Assembly: GCA_047495785.1 (NCBI GenBank)
Contig: JBLDXI010000013.1
Location: 3,596,001 to 3,660,000 of the forward strand
DNA from: Lepidodermella squamata
Taxonomy: Eukaryota > Animalia > Gastrotricha
Reading direction: 5' to 3'
Length of the DNA: 64,000 nt
The notes beneath the pieces were generated by a model. That model was not told the DNA's origin. It ran no database searches and saw only the letters and a list, made by a program, of their open reading frames with translations. The position numbers and the translations under genes were made by a program. Within the stretch, counting starts at the first letter, position 1; every line of letters starts with the position of its first letter. Below are positions 16,190 through 41,303 of this stretch, in pieces.

Positions 16190-18643
16190 ATGCTGTACAC
16201 GTCAATTAAGGCTTTACCATTTCTCATTGTCGTCATAGGTAAATTCGCCCTCGCCGAATTATTGAACTTCTCCGATCGGCTTAACGTCACGGTTTTAGAA
16301 GAGGATGATTTGATCGAAAGGCCATCAATCGAGCAGTTGATGAACTTATCGTCGAATCAGAATCTAACTCTATTTGATGAAGAAGAGCTACCTGATGGCC
16401 GTCGTTTACTCACATTCACTCTTCAAATCAGCGGCTACCAGTTGATGGGCTACGATTTTACTTTTACGGAAGACGAGACTGAAGCTATCAAGTACGCATT
16501 GAGCGGCCAAATACTAGACGATATTCCTAAGTTTGATAAGCTGGCCATGCAAGTGATTAAACGTAGCGAGAAGATCGGCAATCAAACAGGTTACGCGGCG
16601 TGCATGAAAGGTCTCGCCGAACAATTTGACTTCAAGGAGGTGAGAAGGGAGTCTTTAACTATCTGTTGACCAGCTAATACTGATCGACAAAATTACGTAG
16701 AGAAACGGTGTCGAAATTGGCAACTTTTCCAGCCGATATTTGTGGTTTGATGGTCAGTTCATGACCATGGTGGAAGGCTTCGGCATTTTCAACAACCTGG
16801 ATGAAGCTCAGAGATATTGTTTGATTTACACTCCCTCAGAGAAATGCCTTATTCATTTATTTAGTTTGCTTACACGACATACTCAACAATACAATCATAA
16901 TGTTGGCTCCAACTTCAACCTATGCCGTCGAGGCAGCAGGTGGAAACAGGAGAATTGGCAAGCGTAAATTGACCCTCGATCTAACAGATAGAGTTTCTCA
17001 ACTGGAAGAGTGCATTGTCGAACATCCGAAAGGGTTTTTTACCATCTACGACATGGAGGGTAATACTTCCATATCGGATGAGGCAGAACCGTTGACCTAC
17101 CCATGCGGCAACTTGAACGAAGACGAGGTACTTCAGGCTAAAATGATCGCTCATTTTCTAGTTGGATATAACTAACAGGTGAATGGCGGTTACGGCATCG
17201 CAGCTGACTGCATGGATTACGCTATCCAAACGCAAAAATGTCTGGCAAAGCATGGTGAGGAATTATGACTCTTGACTAAAGCTAAGTGAAATTGAATCTC
17301 CACAGTGAATATGCACGACTTCGGTTTCATCACAAATGGAAAGCCTCTGCGAATTCACATCAATTACGGGCAGATGAAACCTATAGCATTTTGGAACGAG
17401 AACGGCATTTTCTTCGGTGAGACAACCTCCTGTGGTTGATTCAGGTTGATAAGCAATTTCTTCATTATTAGGCAACGGAGATGTATCGAACGAATATCCT
17501 TCTTGCTCGAGCATCGACTCTGTTTCTCATGAAATCGGCCACGCCTTGACAGCTCGCTTTTCAGGGCTCTACTACTCCGGAGAAATGGGCTGTATCAATG
17601 AAGGTGAGTACAAGGAATAACCATATCAGTGAATAGGTGAAGTTGATTCTAATTCAGCCTTCAGCGACATCACTGCAATGATGGTTCGAGCTTGCGTTCG
17701 AGGTACAACAGATTGGCTGTTTGACATCGATGCACAGAAGGCCAGAGACGCTGCGAGCCGTAATCTTGTTCGGAATCTGAAAAAGCCGACCTCAGATGCT
17801 CAGCAGATAAAGAAATACAGCGAGTACAGGCCAAACATTGACGTACACGTCTGCAGCGGGATTTATAACCACGCTTTCTACTTGCTGTCCCAAACTCGAG
17901 GATGGGATATCTACTCGGCTTACCAATTGTTCTATGGCGCCAATAGATTTAAATGGGTAGATTTTACCAAAATGGCCGACGGACTATGTGGAATCCTCAC
18001 CTATGCTAAATCGCTAGATCTGCCATCGAAAAAAATGGCAGATATCAGAGAAGCCTTTGGAAAAGTTGGTTTGTTCATCAATGGAACGAAATGCGACCTG
18101 TCAGATGGTTTCGAGAAGAATCCCGATGGATTTATAACACTTGACAACTGCGTTACCACTGAAGGCATTCAAGGAGAATCAACTGATATCTATCATTTCG
18201 TCCACGAAGTGAAAAAGAAGCCCGGCAAACCCGCCCCGTCCAAACTAATCATATCTTTGAGGCTGCCTAAGAGCCAAATAGAAAATGATGATGTTTTAAA
18301 CTCAGAGGACAATGACGACTCCGATTGTGATGATTGCGATGATAACGATATCGATGCGGATGATAATTTGGATGATGACGAAGACAGTGGCGAGATGAAA
18401 GTAGATTTACTGATTTATTATGGTATGAAGAACATACCAAACGGTGGTGACATCAAGTACGGGGAATTCGACGCAGTTATAGCCAGACAATCTGAATCGA
18501 TACAACTGGTGATAAAGTGCCCTCCGATCGGGAATTACACCTTTGTAATCGTCTCGACCGGGCAAGGTGCCTACAGCGATGTTTCTTTCAATGTATGCCA
18601 CTTGTCCTCAGACTCAGATGTCTGTGAGGTAAAACGTTTATAG
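16190..18643 (+). CDS. M4 (thermolysin/elastase/vibriolysin-like) zinc metalloprotease precursor, 7 exons, C-terminal PPC-like domain
   Basis: Exons ~16190-16639, 16701-16818, 16865-17127, 17179-17254, 17306-17416, 17472-17603, 17658-18643. Motifs GGNRRIGK, VNGGYG, HINYG..IAFW..FFGNG, HEIGH, SGLYYSGEMGCINEAFSD, DVHVCSGIYNHAFYLL; N-terminal signal peptide. Confidence 0.93.
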
Positions 18644-29984: not shown

Positions 29985-32447
29985 TTATAATTTATTGACC
30001 TCGCAGACATTTGAGTCTGGGGTCAAGTGGCAGGCATTCAGTGAAACACGGTTAAAAGCACCTTTCCTCGAAGATCCGATAATTATGCTGTAAATGCCAA
30101 TCGGAGGGCACTCAATTACCAGTTGTATCGATTCAGATTGACGTAGTAGAACTGCGTCAAATTCTGCGTACTTGAGGGAGTCACCGTCTGAAATGTTCTT
30201 CATTCCGTAATGAATGAGTAAATCTACTTCCATGAGGCCACTGTCCTCCTCCTCGTCATCATCCTCTTCTTCCTCGTTTTCATCTGCATCTTCCTCGTCA
30301 CAATCATCATCACAATCAGTGTCGTCATCTTCGTCATTCACCACAATTTCGCCATTATCAATTTTGGTCGCAGGTAACCTCAGGGAAAGGATTAATTTAG
30401 ACGGAGCAGGTTTTCCGGGCTTTTGCTTAACTTCGTAGATGAATTGGTAGATATCATTCGAATTTCCTTGAAGGTTTTCTTGGGTATAGCAGTTGGGTAG
30501 TGGGATCAATCCATCAGGATTCTCGTCATAACCATCCGACAGGTCGCATGTCGTGCCATTAATGGTAACTCCGACTTTTCCGAAGGCTACCGTGATATCT
30601 TCCACTTTTTTAGATGGCATTGATAGCCTGTTGGCGTAGGTGAGGATTCCGCAGAGGCCGTCAGCCATTTTAAAGAACTCCCCCCACTGAAACCTATTAG
30701 CGCCATAAAATAATTGATAGGCCTTGTAGATATCCCATCCTCGAGTTTGGGACAGCAAGAAGAAAGCGTGGTTGTAAATCCCGCTGCAGACGTGTACGTC
30801 CATGTTCGGCCTGTACTCGCTGTATTTCTTTATCTGCTGAGCGTCTGACGTCGGCTTTTTGAGATTCCGAACAAGATTACGGCTCGCAGCGTTTTGAACC
30901 TTCTGCGCGTCGATGTCGAACAGCCAATCTGTTGATCCTCGAACGCAAGCTCGAACCATCATTGCAGTGATGTCGCTGAAAGCTGCATTTGATCATCAAA
31001 TTTAATAGCGATTAATTCCTTTTACCAACCTTCATTGATGCAGCCAATTTCGCCGGAGTAGTAGAGCCCTGAAAAGCGAGCTGTCAAAGCGTGCCCGATT
31101 TCGTGTGAAACAGAGTCGATGCTCGAGCAGGAAGGATATTCGTTCGATACATCTCCGTTGCCTTGTTGAAAAATGTCTTTCAACTCTGCAGAACCGCAGT
31201 GTTCTGGTACTCACCGAAAAATACGCCGTTCTCGTTCCAGAATGCCGTAGCTTTCATCCGACCGTAATTTATGTGAACTCGCAGAGGTTTACCATTCGTG
31301 ATGAAACCAAAGTCATACAACTGAACTGTAGAGAGAATTGTAGAGCGAAATGCTACGACGAGGGTTGATCTTACCATGTTTCGCCAAACATTTTTGCGTT
31401 TGAATAGCGTAATCCATACAGTCAGCTGCGATACCATAACCGCCATTCACCTTATGGTAATTTCCAATTAAAAAATGAGCTACTGGTATCGCTGAAGTAC
31501 CTCGTCTTCTATCAAAGTACCACACGGGTACGCCAGAGCTTCAGCCTCATTCGATATCGATGTATTTCCTTTCATGTCGTAGATGGCGAAAAATCCTTTC
31601 GATTGTTCGACGACGCATTCATCCAGCTGAGTAACTCTATCTGTAAGATCGAGACTCACTTTACGCTTGCCGATTCTCCTATTGCCACCCGTAGCCTCGA
31701 CGGCATAAGTCGAGGTTGGGCTTAACAGGACGATAGTATCGTTGAGTATGTCGTACATGCATACTAAATCAATTTAGGATAACATTGTGCGAATAGGGAA
31801 TATCGGAAGTTTAACAATATCTCTGAGCTTCATCTAGATTGTTGATAATGTTGAACCCATCATACATGGTCATGGTATGGCTATTAAAATCGTAGAACAA
31901 AAATCGCGCTGAACGGGTATTGATTTCGACCCCATCTCCCTAAGTAATTTCACTGATTAACAGGTAGCCATGAGAACCTGTATGTAACCTCCTTGAAGTT
32001 GAATTGTTCATCAAGACTTTTCATACACGCCGCATAACCTGTTTGATTGGCGATCTTCTCGCCGGGTCCAATCACTTGTCTGGCCATCTTATCGAACCGA
32101 GGAATATCGTCCAGTATTTGACCGCTCAATGCGTACTGGATGGCTTCAGTTTCGTCCTCGGTAAAAGTGAAATCGTAGCCGGTTAACTGATAGCCGCTGA
32201 TGTGGAGAAGGAATGTGAGAAGGCGGCGACCATCTGGTAGCTCCTCTTCGTCGAATAAAGTCAGATTCTGATTCGGTGATAAGCTCAGCAGCTGCTCGAT
32301 TGATGGCCTTTCAGCCAGGTCATCCTTTTGCAAAACTGTGACATTGAACCGATTGGATTGATTGTACAAGCGGGGCTCCTTGGCAAGGGCGAAGTTGCCA
32401 ATAAGAACAATAAGAATTATGCAAGCTTTAAATGACGTGAACAGCAT
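29985..32447 (-). CDS. Second M4 metalloprotease paralogue (inverted), 7 exons, same intron positions
   Basis: GNGDVSNEYPSCSSIDSVSHEIGHALTARFSGLYYSGEIGCINE|AFSD and DVHVCSGIYNHAF are intact; aligns with 16190-18643 over its full length. Confidence 0.93.
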
Positions 32448-34927: not shown

Positions 34928-35304
34928 GGAAAAACACGTGAACGAATTATCCGGAAAGAAAATACCATGATCTTGCTACTTCGAAAATCATCAGCGTGAA
35001 AATGAGTTAAGCTTAAAGTAACTTTTATAGAGCGCAGAAAGCAATATTTTTGATTGTCAAATTAAACACACCTTGTCCATCTGGGTGAGGAATGTGACGG
35101 TTACTTTCGCAAGACAACAGCATGAAAGGTTTCTTCAACTTTGTATACAGACATTGATTTATCAAAGATGAGTAAAAACATAGGGATTAATGCATTGATA
35201 ATGTTTATTTCATCTTCTTCCTGAGTAATACTCAGAATTAAAGGTTTTGTCTGATTAAACTTAGATCAACCCAGCACCGCTTGTCCGTACTAGTTTCGTG
35301 CCAT

Positions 35305-36617
35305 TTAGGCCTTAGTGTAAGGATTGATGCAGCCATTAGGTTGGCCAATCTTCGTTCCATCCATATTACCAGCAGGACCGTAGTTGCAAACCTTAAATGT
35401 TATATCGTGGATATGCACTCACGCAAAATGAATCATTCGCATACCTGGACGAACTTATATTTCTTGGTCGGGCAGTAAGCCATGGCACAGCTACGAATTC
35501 GAATATGAAACTTTCAATTCGATTTTCCAATAGTCACTTACCCGACAAAACGGCTCCTTTCAGCGACGACTAAGTGAAATTATTTCAATAGATTATCGAC
35601 TGTCCTCATTAAAACTTCAAAAAATCATACCCTGAGTGTAATGTCCGACATCACCAGTAGCGCCAGACTTTTTACCCTTGCCGAATTCGAAATCCTTCTG
35701 TTCCTCAGCCTATCATTATTGGATAAAATGTCAACTAGCGATGAGATAAAATCCTTGATACTTACCCAGGCGTCGATGCAGTTGGACCAGGTACGGTTGT
35801 AGTCGGCGAAGCAGACGTTCTGTCCGGCGTCGTAGTACTCGCCAGGGGTGGCACGAAAAGTCTTCAGAGAGCGATCGTCACCCTTGTCGTGAGGCTGAGC
35901 GGAATCAGGACACTGGGCAGCCCAGCTGTAGTTCAAGTATATGGGGATCGAAATTTGTATGCTTATACATGGAACAAATATCCTACCGTTCCGCTAGAAT
36001 GGCGAGCTCGGGATCCCACTCGAGCTTGCCGAGGTTCTTGGCCGGGGGGTCGGTGATACCTGGGTTTTATGTTATAATCAACAACGGCATAACACGTCAT
36101 CAACTCACCACGCCAGCAGTTGTGGCGATCGACAATCTCCTTCATAGAGACGCCATACAAAGCCTCAGCCTTGTCAGACAGGCAGCGAGTAGTAGGGCCA
36201 GTAATTGATCCCGAGCATTGAGACTGTCAGGCAAAAGATGCTCAAATTAAAACTCAGATGTCGGCTGTGAATGCCGCCTTAGACTTACGCCCCTGGCAGG
36301 AGAGGTGAAAGGAGCGGTCGGGGTGAGCTCAGCACCGCACTTCGACACAGGGCATGTGAACTGGGGTTTGGACCATTCGCCATCTCCGACTTTAGTGATC
36401 TTGCTTTCGCCGATAGCGTCACCCTTGTAGCAGCAGTATTTAGCCCACTGAGTTTTCACTCCTCCGGAAGACGACCAGCCGGAAGAGCAGGCATAGGCAC
36501 CTATATGGTGTAAGGTAAGGTTTTTTACCCGAAAGAGAAACATAGCTTACCAGAGATGGCAGGCTGAGCCTGAGCGGCAGCGACGAGGCACGCAGCAACA
36601 ACTAAGATAAAAGCCAT
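35305..36617 (-). CDS. CAP/SCP/TAPS (CRISP / venom-allergen-like) secreted protein, copy A, ~9 exons
   Basis: Signal MAFILVVAACLVAAAQAQ; Cys-rich N-extension; HNCWR...WDPELA, WAAQC, GQNV, GHYTQVV, VGCAMAYC, VCNYGPAGN. Confidence 0.9.
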
Positions 36618-37008
36618 GATTTATGGTGAAATAATTATCTGAGGAATCAAGCGAGCAATCCGCTTGTTAAATGGACCACTTAGTTTAATCAGCTGCAAAT
36701 TTCCAGAAAATGTTCTCAGGGCTCAACAAACTCCGCTAAGCCAACAACCTCTTCATCGAAGACTTCTTCGCAACGACAAAAAACGGCAGACTTTGTGAAG
36801 CAGATGTAAACAGCTGAAAAAACTGTTGAAAAATGTATTAAATGCTTAAAGGGCGGAGAGCGGATCTAGGGACCAAATTTCAGGATTTAACCTTAACAAT
36901 TTCTTCGCATTTTTCAGGCAACCAAAATCAAGGTGAAAAATAGACTTATCAGATTGAAATTCGGCAGTACTAATACACTAGTAACAAACAGGTTAAACGA
37001 GATGAGTT

Positions 37009-37385
37009 TCAAAAATGTAACCAGGCACTACCAGTGGGTAACCACCGACGATTGCCGTAGCCGAAGCCGAAGCCACCGTAACCGAAGACGCCGTAGCCGT
37101 AACCAGGATAGCCGAGTCCAAAGCCACATTGGTGTTTTTCTTTCGGAGTTTCGACATCGGATGGTCACGACGCTTGCGGCCGATGAAACCTGGGTAACCG
37201 CTACAAATTACGGGAGCGAAGTACCGCTGTAGGGTATGGTAGGGATCATCCCTACCAGTTCAATCGGTACCCACAGCCAACTCAATCAACGGCCAAACGG
37301 GGACCTTTACCTTATCCTTACCAGTTCTGCGGTCCTACTTCGCTCTCTGGCCTTAACCAAGGCCGCCGTAACCGAGGCCAGCTAT
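37009..37385 (-). pseudogene. Degenerate 3' fragment of the Gly/Tyr-rich peptide precursor (paralogue of 40508-41303)
   Basis: Aligns to 40508-40710 ([11 protein letters not shown]...) with indels, KR>KH and W>C changes, an internal insertion, and no signal-peptide exon. Confidence 0.85.
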
Positions 37386-38320: not shown

Positions 38321-38767
38321 AATCTCTTCTTCTTCATTTCGCGTTTTTCGTGAGTGAGGTAAAGCACTTGAACGAACTATTTGGAAGCGAATATGACTTT
38401 GCTGTTATGCTATGCAAAATTATCATAGAACAACTTTGAAATTAGCTCCAGCTTTTATCAGTTTTATAGCATTAATTGTTATTGTATTGAATATTGAACG
38501 CATCTCGCCCATCTTGGTGCGAGATGTTGTAGTTACCTTTGCAGGCCTTATAAACATACGGTTCCTTCATCCGTATGTTAATTGCTTGATCAAGGAGAAG
38601 TAAAAATAAAAATCTTGGAGGAGTAGAGAATAGGGATTATTCCTCCAAGAATGTAATGCATGAGTAATGTTTATTTCATCTTCCTGATTAATACTCAAAA
38701 TTAAAGGTTTTGTCTGATTACTCTCTAATCAACCCAGCACCACTTGTCCTTATTAGTTTCGCGCCGT

Positions 38768-40065
38768 TTAGGCCTTAGTGTAGGGCATAAGGCTGCCATT
38801 AGGTTGGCCAATAGCAGTTCCATCCATATTACCAGCGGGACCGTAGTTGCAAACCTTGGTGAGAAATCGTGAGGTGATTCACGCGAAATGGCTCGTCAAC
38901 ATACCTGGACGTATTTCATGCTCTTGTTCGGACAGTAAGCCCAGCCGCAGCTAAACAATACGACTTTGAAACTTCCACTTCTGTTTTCAAATACACTTAC
39001 CCGACAAAGCGGCTCCTTTCAGCGACGACTAAGTGAAATTATTCAAGTATAATCGACTGCCCTTATGAAAATTTCGAACAATCATACCCTGAGTGTAATG
39101 TCCGATTTGAGCGTTAGATGGAGAGGTAGCCTTTTTACCCTTGCCGTAATCGAAATCATTCTGCTCCTCAGCCTATTATTATTGGACAAAACGTCGACTA
39201 GCCATAAAAAAATCCTTCATGAATACCCAAGCGTCGATGCAGGAGGACCAGGACTGCTGGTATGAGGCAAAGCAGACGTTTTGTCCAGCGTCGTAGTTCT
39301 CACCAGGGGTTTTACGGAATTTTACCAGAGTGCGATCATCACCCTTGTCATGGGGCTGAACGCCGGATTCGGGGCACTGAGCAGCCCAGCTGCAATGCAA
39401 GATCGAATTTTGGACTCTATAAGGAACAAGTATCCTACCGTTCGGCAAGAATGGCGAGCTCGGGGTCCCACTGGAGCTTGCCGAGGTTCTTGGCCGCGGG
39501 GTTGACGATACCTGGGTTTTATGTCATTATCGGCAGAGGCATAACAAGATATGAACTCACTACGCCAGCAGTTGTGGCGGTCGACAACCTCATTCATGGA
39601 GACGGGAATCAAGGAATCACACTTGTCCGACAGGCAACGAGTGGGAGGGCCAGTGAGTGTTCCCGAGCATTGATTCTTGGCAAAATGAGCGCAATATCAA
39701 ACTCAGATTTTGCAAAATGAATTGTATTATACTTACGCCCCTTGAAGGAGTGGTGAAGTTAGTAGGGGTGAGCGCAGCACCGCACTTCGAAGTAGGGCAT
39801 GAGAACTGGGGTTGGGACCAATCGGCGTTTCCGACTTTGGTGATCTTGGTATCGCCGGTAGCGTCACCCTTGTAGCAGCAGTATTTAGCCCACAGGGTCT
39901 TCACTCCTCCCGAAGTCGCCGATCCAGAAGAGCAGGCATAAGCACCTGAATTATGGGCGAAAGGTAAGATTCTATGTCGATACAGAAACCTTGCTTACCA
40001 GCGATGTCAGGCTGAGCCTGAGCGGCAGCAACGAGGCACGCAGCAGCAACTAAGATAAAAGCCAT
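38768..40065 (-). CDS. CAP/SCP/TAPS secreted protein, copy B, ~9 exons
   Basis: HNCWRS|IVNPAAKNLGKLQWDPELAILAER|WAAQC...GQNV...AW|AEE...GHYTQ|VVAERSRFVG|CGWAYC...|VCNYGPAGN...YTKA*. Confidence 0.9.
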
Positions 40066-40507
40066 GATTTAGTGGAATAATAATCTTAGGAATCCAGCGA
40101 GCACTGCGCTTCTTAAATGGACTACTTTAGTTTAATCAGCTGCGATTTTCCAGAAACTGTTCTCACAGTTCAACGACCTCCGCCAAGTTAACAACATGTT
40201 TGCTGAAGATTTTTTTCTCGCCGTTTTATCTGTCATTAAAACTGCAGATTTTTGAAGCGGCGTTAACAGCTGAAACAACTCGGAGCTGCGGAGTAATGAA
40301 AAGGGCGCGACATCGGCGGCAAGTTGATCTAGGCAATAAACTTTCGGTATATTTACTCAGAACGGAGCATTTCCTCACGCGTTTTACGCCAAAAAAAATG
40401 AGGTGAAAAAAGTCAGTTTCACTAAAAAAGCGCTGTTTATTTTTATCAGATTGAAATTCGCCAGTACTAAGATGCATCAGTAACAAATACGTTAAACGAG
40501 ATGAGTT

Positions 40508-41303
40508 TCAAAAAATGACACCAGGCGCTACCAGTGGGTAACCACCGACGAACCCAGGATAGCCGTAGCCGAAGCCGAAGCCACCGTAACCAAACCCGCT
40601 GTAGCCGTAACCAGGGTAGCCGAATCCAAGGCCCCATTGGCGTTTTTCTTTCGGAGTTTCAACATCGGATGTATCACGACGCTTGCGGCCGATGAAACCT
40701 GGGTATCCGAAACCGCCGTAGCCAAGGCCATAGCCACCGTAACCCAGCCCATAACCGCCATAACCGAAACCAACAGTGCCTATCGAGAAAATAGTTTGAA
40801 CAAACCATTCAACTGATTTCTTCATTACCTGGGTAAAGAATTTGGCGTTTATTCTTTTTGGCATGGCTGACATCTCGACGCTTGCGGCCGATGAAACCAG
40901 GATAGCCAAAGCCACCGTAGCCAAGACCGCCGTAGCCTAAACCGTAGCCAAGACCGCCGTACCCGCCATATCCGACACCCGGTAACAGAATTTGGCGTTT
41001 GTCATTGTCGCCAGCCGGGTCGTCTTTCGTCTCCTCTTTCTCGCCACTTTCCTCGCCCGAAGGGTCGTCTTTCGTGTCGGCTGTTTCGGCATCACGACGC
41101 TTGCGACCGATGAAACCTGGGTAACCGCCGTAGCCGTAACCAAGGCCGCCGTAGCCACCGTACCCGAAACCTAGACCGCCGTAGCCGAGACCAACGGCGC
41201 CTGGGTACAAAATCTGCCGCTTTGCCGTACTATCTTCATCGTGAAGGTAATTTTCTGCTAGGCAAGCAGTGATGGCAAGCAGCAGAACAGCTAGTGTTCT
41301 CAT
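40508..41303 (-). CDS. Prepro-polypeptide encoding four Gly/Tyr-rich peptides (exons 40829-41303, 40508-40779)
   Basis: Signal peptide; three KR-QIL..(GYG)n..PGFIG-RKRR units plus KR-QWG...VIF*; mostly acidic spacers; 49-nt phase-1 intron. Confidence 0.92.

Follow-up and report, generated by a model that had tools for sequence, protein, structure and literature searches.

The minus-strand locus at 41303..40508 of the Lepidodermella squamata sequence analyzed here (64,000 nucleotides (nt) of contig JBLDXI010000013.1, assembly GCA_047495785.1, positions 3,596,001 to 3,660,000; hereafter the window) raises the question of whether its glycine- and tyrosine-rich repeats belong to a working gene and, if so, to what use a gastrotrich would put the product. 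The locus is a genuine protein-coding gene, and its product is a secreted polyprotein that is intrinsically disordered. We favor, at a probability of roughly 0.55, the interpretation that the product of this gene is processed into capped, uncharged peptides which are made in bulk for an extracellular role other than signalling, i.e., as a material or a surface coat. The parts of this interpretation differ in strength: judged from the sequence, processing of the precursor into peptides is probable and, if processing occurs, a material would be the foremost use at slightly less than even odds, defence a possible one, signalling an unlikely one and any other use an even less likely one.

Layout of the precursor and selection on its processing sites

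An intact two-exon gene encoding 248 residues (158 + 1 + 89) was found. Exon 1 (40829..41303; this and all following features of the gene lie on the minus strand) begins with the start codon at 41303 and encodes the signal peptide, a pro-piece, units 1 and 2 with the spacers that follow them (1 and 2) and five residues of unit 3, and it also holds one base of the glycine codon that the intron divides; its open reading frame (ORF) reads into the intron and terminates there, the donor site being CAG/GTAATG. The intron (40780..40828) has a length of 49 nt, is of the GT-AG type (GTAATG...TCGATAG) and of phase 1, and interrupts unit 3 after QILYP, within the Gly codon of the sixth residue (G at 40829, GC at 40779-40778). 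Exon 2 (40508..40779) completes unit 3, adds its Gly-RKRR site, spacer 3 and unit 4 and closes with the stop codon TGA at 40510-40508, and an AATAAA at 40436..40441, 67-72 nt 3' of the stop codon, is likely the polyadenylation signal. The putative signal peptide, as read from the sequence (41256..41303, residues 1-16), is likely cut after Cys-Leu-Ala and is followed by an N-terminal pro-piece of 13 residues (41217..41255) with Lys-Arg (KR) at its end.

The remainder of the protein consists of four units and three spacers. Units 1 to 3 start directly after KR with Q-I-L-(Y/L)-P-G and end with G-(Y/F)-P-G-F-I, followed by Gly-Arg-Lys-Arg-Arg (G-RKRR), in which an amide donor would be combined with a furin-type cleavage site: unit 1 (36 residues, 41109..41216) is followed by such a site at 41094..41108 (pattern match C13:3637092-3637108), unit 2 (35 residues, 40890..40994) by the site at 40875..40889 and unit 3 (35 residues, 5+1+29, with QILYP at 40830..40844 in exon 1 and the last 29 residues at 40691..40777 in exon 2) by the site at 40676..40690, the latter two likewise being matches to the codon pattern. 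Unit 4 (43 residues, 40511..40639) starts with Q-W-G-L-G-F after KR, at residue 206 of 248, and runs with G-V-I-F into the stop codon, which leaves it with a free C-terminus. Spacer 1 (33 residues, 40995..41093, net charge -9), spacer 2 (10 residues, 40845..40874, net charge +3) and spacer 3 (12 residues, 40640..40675, net charge -1, of a DT.DVE.PKEKR type that is also present in paralogs) all end with KR. Signal peptide, KR-Gln unit starts and G-RKRR ends had been read from the letters of the window in a preliminary description of the locus, and all of them were present; the lack of charge and the unit lengths of about 35-43 residues given there agree with the measured 36, 35, 35 and 43 residues and with the absence of Asp, Glu, Lys, Arg and His from all four units (0 of 149 positions). 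The spacers are indeed charged, as that description states, but not uniformly acidic, spacer 2 being basic. The exons of unit 3 had been joined there with no mention of the intron.

The charged residues of the protein (52 of 248) are all located outside the units, for which random placement gives a hypergeometric P of 3.5e-26, and the individual units contain 37-46% Gly and 16-19% Tyr. An AlphaFold prediction based on a six-row alignment yielded a mean predicted local distance difference test score (pLDDT) of 46, with the signal peptide as the only helix and the only segment above 60 and the remainder below 50; this is consistent with a disordered precursor.

The gene has relatives within and beyond this genome. 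All sequence searches were performed with exon 1 and exon 2 as separate queries, and exon 1, compared with all six reading frames of the genome, detected four further loci. The closest paralog (C13:3809k, at C13:3809014-3810082; L004:1495-2563), located 172 kb away, has five units and an intron at the identical position; two loci on another contig (C7:994k and C7:1364k) have at least seven units each; and C13:3190k (L006) encodes a long polyprotein in which Leu replaces Gly before RKRR and which contains many extra acidic pieces flanked by Arg-Arg. P0001/P0015 come from two environmental, cDNA-like contigs of JGI sample 3300036412, which carry a 5' untranslated region (UTR), an uninterrupted ORF and AATAAA, and P0010, a transcript-like contig from Logan run SRR28720669, groups with the C13:3190k branch by its Leu before RKRR. 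The contig from the Logan run lacks an intron of the C13:3190k type and shows many synonymous differences, as expected of the mRNA of a related species. The members have in common the type of signal peptide (M-K/R, a hydrophobic stretch and C-x-A, then acidic residues, in the paralogs and P0001), the KR-Gln start, the G-RKRR-D/E end (with the said Leu in C13:3190k and P0010), the intron position and the type of spacer; they differ in the number of units (from 4 to at least 7), in unit length (35-53 residues) and in the C-terminal dipeptides. Moreover, the last unit of P0001, with GGYP and a hydrophobic tail, resembles unit 4.

The processing sites were compared in 23 units, related by duplication, from four full paralogs (the gene at 41303..40508 included) and P0001. 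The tetrad R-K-R-R was present in all 23 units, with Gly at position -1 in 22 of them and never at -2 or -3, and was followed by Asp or Glu in 21. By contrast, the synonymous codons at these sites vary: Lys is encoded by AAA (13) or AAG (10), Gly by GGC (15) or GGT (7), the third Arg by CGT (16) or CGC (7) and the fourth Arg by CGC (16), CGT (6) or CGA (1). At the starts of the single-exon units, the C13:3190k branch included, KR preceded 22 of 22, Gln was the first residue in 18 and Ile or Val the second in 21. Such constancy of the sites among paralogs and in a second species, in the face of changing codons, is what would be expected of the secreted precursor that had been proposed at the outset, in which dibasic and RKRR sites bound several peptide copies, Gln is the N-terminal residue and Gly donates the amide. 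In the genome as a whole, the codon pattern for G-R-K-R-R-D/E had 36 matches as compared to 2 for the control, and 20 of the 36 fall in the four full genes of the family and a truncated copy of the present gene. Judged by these comparisons, the layout is to be regarded as being under selection and not as a product of chance.

The two ends of the units point to what may be selected. The closest paralog ends with ...Y-P-G-L-I-G-R-stop, and a poly(A) signal is present in the 3' UTR behind it. Since a terminal Gly-Arg is useless for endoproteolysis but is needed by carboxypeptidase and amidating enzyme, the amidation signal itself appears to be under selection. The C-terminal dipeptides, by contrast, differ among the paralogs (FI, LV, AY, FY, IY, LL and VI) and are always hydrophobic; ends of this kind, hydrophobic but variable, would be better explained by a physico-chemical requirement than by a receptor pharmacophore. 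Whichever role the peptides have, the family is a clear example of processing signals that are kept by selection in peptides whose body drifts in length.

The gene structure is likewise preserved. A phase-1 intron is located just after the Q-I-L-x-P-G unit start in the present gene (49 nt), in C13:3809k (55 nt) and in C13:3190k (about 52 nt), and the comparison of exon 1 with C13:3809k gave an approximate ratio of nonsynonymous to synonymous substitution rates (dN/dS) of 0.2 at a dS of about 0.9, dS being saturated in exon 2. A natural control for the loss of frame without selection is provided by a truncated, decayed 3' copy on the minus strand at 36946..37199, 3.5 kb away, which holds the last ~250 nt from the end of unit 3 via spacer 3 and unit 4 into the 3' UTR: it is ~89% identical, and deletions of 1, 8 and 1 nt destroy its frame. 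The fragment derives from a tandem duplication of 3.45 kb (35213-37163 as compared to 38676-40671, 73-91% identity).

Codon usage, relatives and candidate processing enzymes

Codon usage was compared with that of four other ORFs of the window and with ribosomal-protein exons (RPL3, two copies, and RPS3A). For Gly, GGY codons make up 88% in the gene, 56% in the other ORFs and 95% in the ribosomal-protein exons; the respective values are 79, 61 and 92% for Tyr TAC, 77, 55 and 97% for Phe TTC and 79, 26 and 83% for Arg CGY. The difference between the gene and the other ORFs of the window in Gly codons gave a Fisher P of 6e-6. This codon usage suggests high expression and is taken as a moderate sign of it.

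Database searches added little to the family. When 1.84 billion representative proteins were searched exhaustively with phmmer, only P0010 and P0001, neither of them named, fell below 1e-10; a word-indexed protein search with exon 1 returned one convincing relative, P0001, and with exon 2 no matches. Marine Gly/Tyr-rich proteins with RKKR sites that appeared in the word-indexed search with exon 1 were treated as compositional or convergent. The protein Atlas contained no score above 0.80, a lead to an unrelated nematode peptide family reaching only 0.75, and two metagenome scans gave no match that was confirmed by tblastn, probably because of low-complexity masking. Taken together, the family is undescribed and, as far as these searches indicate, apparently restricted to gastrotrichs.

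Weak phmmer matches to unnamed proteins of Caenorhabditis auriculariae, the mite Medioppia subpectinata and the krill Meganyctiphanes norvegica were too weak for homology to be assigned. These proteins are multi-copy with uncharged units and Gly-R-K-K/R-R-D/E ends, which suggests that the principle of processing may be spread wider than the gastrotrich family. The protein of C. auriculariae (P0011, CAD6193568.1; L018:3001-5332) is an unnamed polyprotein of 661 residues with ~15 copies of an uncharged unit of ~20 residues, each preceded by R-x-E-R and ending with A-V-I-Gly-R-K-K/R-R-D/E; its processing logic would be the same as that of the gastrotrich gene, but the peptide body differs.

Enzymes of the kind that would be needed for processing were sought in the genome by their domains. 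The proprotein-convertase P domain had 10 matches, including a pair 8 kb apart on contig C46, a rather high number for a small invertebrate. The N-domain of copper type II ascorbate-dependent monooxygenases had 39 matches, mostly clustered on contig C13 (C13:1.99-2.36 Mb and elsewhere), and the C-terminal domain at least 22 at E <= 1e-8. A DOMON match (E <= 0.001) was found beside only one copper monooxygenase gene, which is of the dopamine-beta-hydroxylase type; most of the monooxygenases thus have the two-domain layout of peptidylglycine hydroxylating monooxygenase (PHM). One monooxygenase (L026:1132-2685) carries a Temptin_C domain in front of its two catalytic domains. It is tempting to speculate that this unusually large set of copper monooxygenases is relevant to heavy peptide amidation.

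Elsewhere in the window, the tandem duplication also holds two copies of a small spliced minus-strand gene, with signal-peptide exons at ~39978-40065 and 36530-36620 and Cys-rich exons at 39617-39904 and 36247-36543; a Pfam search of the duplicated Cys-rich ORFs gave no match. Furthermore, a match to the C-terminal domain of thermolysin-type (M4) metallopeptidases, a family uncommon in animals, was obtained with each of two ORFs, at 17678-18643 (plus strand, 321 residues) and at 29985-30962 (minus strand, 325 residues).

Possible roles of the released peptides

Following this, we propose that subtilisin-like proprotein convertases of the secretory pathway would cut the precursor after each Lys-Arg and each Arg-Lys-Arg-Arg, that a carboxypeptidase would trim the basic residues, that the exposed Gly of units 1 to 3 would be converted to a C-terminal amide and that N-terminal Gln would cyclise to pyroglutamate (pGlu). 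The expected products are three peptides of 35-36 residues of the form pGlu ... Pro-Gly-Phe-Ile-NH2, in which the Tyr hydroxyls would be the only ionisable groups, a peptide of 43 residues with its C-terminal carboxylate as sole charge, and three charged spacer peptides. With ~44% Gly, ~25-30% aromatic residues and no charge, the unit peptides would be expected to associate strongly after separation from the spacers: Tyr and Phe could act as 'stickers' spaced by Gly, so that solubility would be poor and self-association would set in once the charged spacers are removed. The resulting bulk extracellular material might be a cuticle or scale matrix, an adhesive or an egg envelope, perhaps also a protective coat, and the conserved peptide ends could serve assembly or enzyme recognition. 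Of antimicrobial, neuropeptide and self-assembling material, between which the preliminary description had left its reading divided, zero charge, variable C-termini and codon usage would favor a material made in bulk or a defence of the surface over a neuropeptide. In the same direction, production from several genes with several copies each, together with the codon bias and the hydrophobic but variable C-terminal dipeptides, argues for a bulk material or surface coat as opposed to a messenger.

The same processing could also yield host-defence peptides, with the released Gly/aromatic-rich peptides acting against bacteria or fungi at the body surface in the manner of the epidermal nematode peptides NLP-29 and caenacins or of the Gly-rich amidated peptides of spiders, an alternative we consider possible but doubtful. 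Blocked peptide ends protect against exopeptidases, and a multi-gene, multi-copy family with rapid variation in length and a codon usage that suggests an abundant product would suit this role. Moreover, the Q-W-G start of unit 4 is close to the QWGYG motif of nematodes, and in Caenorhabditis elegans secreted Gly/Tyr-rich peptides are induced by fungal infection (PMC2453101) and delivered to the cuticle (PMC11993903). However, peptides of zero charge would lack the electrostatic attraction by which antimicrobials usually reach microbial membranes. The nematode peptides, moreover, are basic, present once per precursor and not further processed (PMC11993903), and no sequence search joined them to the gastrotrich family. 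A precursor of neuropeptides or hormones, with the pGlu-Ile-Leu and Pro-Gly-Phe-Ile-amide ends as pharmacophores of receptor ligands, would be in accordance with the prohormone-like architecture, in which a signal peptide precedes repeated copies that start with Gln, are set off by dibasic sites and have Gly as amide donor, and with the identical ends of the three copies that bear an amidation signal within the gene. This reading is nevertheless judged quite unlikely: as messengers, uncharged peptides of 35-53 residues and low complexity would be poorly soluble, their internal length extends over this whole range, their C-terminal residues vary widely across the paralogs, and the codons used are like those of very highly expressed genes. 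A title-level literature search brought up surveys of lophotrochozoan and mollusc neuropeptides but none of gastrotrich neuropeptides.

Cleavage itself would be dispensable if the protein were an unprocessed elastomeric or matrix protein, built like elastin, lamprin or resilin from hydrophobic Gly/Tyr blocks in alternation with charged linkers, whose basic residues would take part in cross-linking or bind the matrix. Its GGLGY-type repeats, the alternating pattern of domains, the predicted disorder and sub-threshold or borderline compositional Pfam matches (Lamprin, 27.3 bits with a cut-off of 34; Chorion_1, 22.7 bits with a cut-off of 22.3) are in line with such a protein. Cross-linking, however, requires neither an exact RKRR in 23 of 23 units nor Gly before it in 22 of 23, nor does it require Lys-Arg-Gln at unit starts or a gene that ends with Gly-Arg-stop, and the last unit has no linker at all; an unprocessed matrix protein is therefore regarded as unlikely. 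That the gene is a silent or dying copy with an intact-looking but unexpressed ORF is very improbable. The gene adjoins the tandem duplication which yielded the decayed fragment, and no transcript of it was found in the protein searches with each exon or in the metagenome scans; on the other hand, ORF, splice sites, AATAAA and processing sites have remained intact after the divergence from the nearest paralog (dS ~0.9, dN/dS ~0.2), and the neighbouring fragment illustrates the speed at which a copy that is not under selection loses its frame.

Several points weigh against bulk production of capped, uncharged peptides for a material or coat. Cleavage, pyroglutamate and amide are predicted from sequence in all members of the family, and neither transcript nor peptide of the gene was found by the protein searches with each exon or the metagenome scans. 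The strong conservation of both peptide ends would suit a receptor ligand equally. Codon bias is partial, as Lys and Leu codons depart from the ribosomal-protein pattern, and could instead reflect homogenisation of the repeats. The substitution rates are approximate because low-complexity sequence aligns ambiguously, and the 23 units do not represent independent observations because they are related by duplication. Moreover, the sites at the N-termini of the units consist of Lys-Arg only, and since they have no Arg at P4 an enzyme of the PC1/PC2/kexin type would be needed and not furin; the enzyme matches of the genome are at the level of domain families, namely the convertase P domain and the copper monooxygenase domains.

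Despite these points, the production of capped, uncharged peptides for a material or coat would have consequences beyond this locus. As a tentative and by itself doubtful generalization, gastrotrichs might mass-produce uncharged Gly/Tyr peptides capped by pGlu and amide, with convertase cleavage as the switch from a soluble precursor to a self-assembling material of scales, adhesive or egg envelope; this would have no described counterpart in animals, and the set of PHM-like monooxygenases might serve it. A literature search on gastrotrich cuticle found morphology only and no chemistry, and a search for furin-cut Gly/Tyr polyproteins found none. If the peptides are building blocks, they would offer a first handle on the molecular make-up of gastrotrich cuticle, scales, adhesive and egg envelopes. 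The assembly of charge-free 'sticker and spacer' peptides triggered by a protease would then occur naturally, which would be of interest for work on phase separation and bio-inspired materials. Should the peptides act in defence instead, they would be antimicrobials that function without charge and thus challenge the usual cationic model.

Comparison with known systems

In composition the nematode peptides of the NLP-29/caenacin kind are the nearest to the gastrotrich units. The likeness to the nematode NLP-29 to NLP-31, CNC and GRSP/FIPR peptides consists in secretion, richness in Gly and aromatic residues, organization as a multigene family and a Gln-Trp-Gly start, the latter in the gastrotrich confined to unit 4. 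The NLP-29/caenacin peptides follow directly after the signal peptide, whereas the gastrotrich precursor has four copies, predicted to be cut at KR and RKRR, with zero charge and an amidation signal. Nematode NLP/CNC proteins were absent from the word-indexed and phmmer results. Position of the motif, basicity and sequence similarity all differ, so that the locus does not belong to the NLP-29/caenacin family and the link drawn in the preliminary description is reduced to a resemblance; a functional analogy is possible.

With lamprin and silk-moth chorion the units share G-G-L-G-Y-like repeats, richness in Gly and Tyr and the expected self-association, but neither is a polyprotein that has convertase sites and capped ends. 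Assignment to the Lamprin family (PF06403) was rejected, the match being below its cut-off and restricted to residues 34-63; the match to Chorion_1 (PF01723), which covers profile positions 2-58 of 169, i.e., signal peptide and Gly/Tyr repeat, was read as compositional, and a KRTAP match in Pfam, likewise below its cut-off, was rejected as compositional.

Diatom silaffin precursors and profilaggrin are repetitive precursors which are cut into peptides that serve as building material. The analogy to them is one of principle only, since they are unrelated to the gastrotrich gene in sequence, cleavage motif and organism and also in their chemistry, which is polycationic or His-rich. Comparable in architecture are the precursors of FMRFamide-type peptides, of apidaecin and of Drosophila Baramicin, which combine a signal peptide, spaced tandem copies, dibasic or furin sites, Gly as amide donor and pGlu. 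Their products are short or cationic, whereas those predicted for the gastrotrich gene comprise 35-43 residues (up to 53 in the paralogs) and are of low complexity and uncharged. The overall architecture is hence that of a classical prohormone or antimicrobial polyprotein, and the novelty lies in the predicted products, which are long, of low complexity and wholly uncharged.

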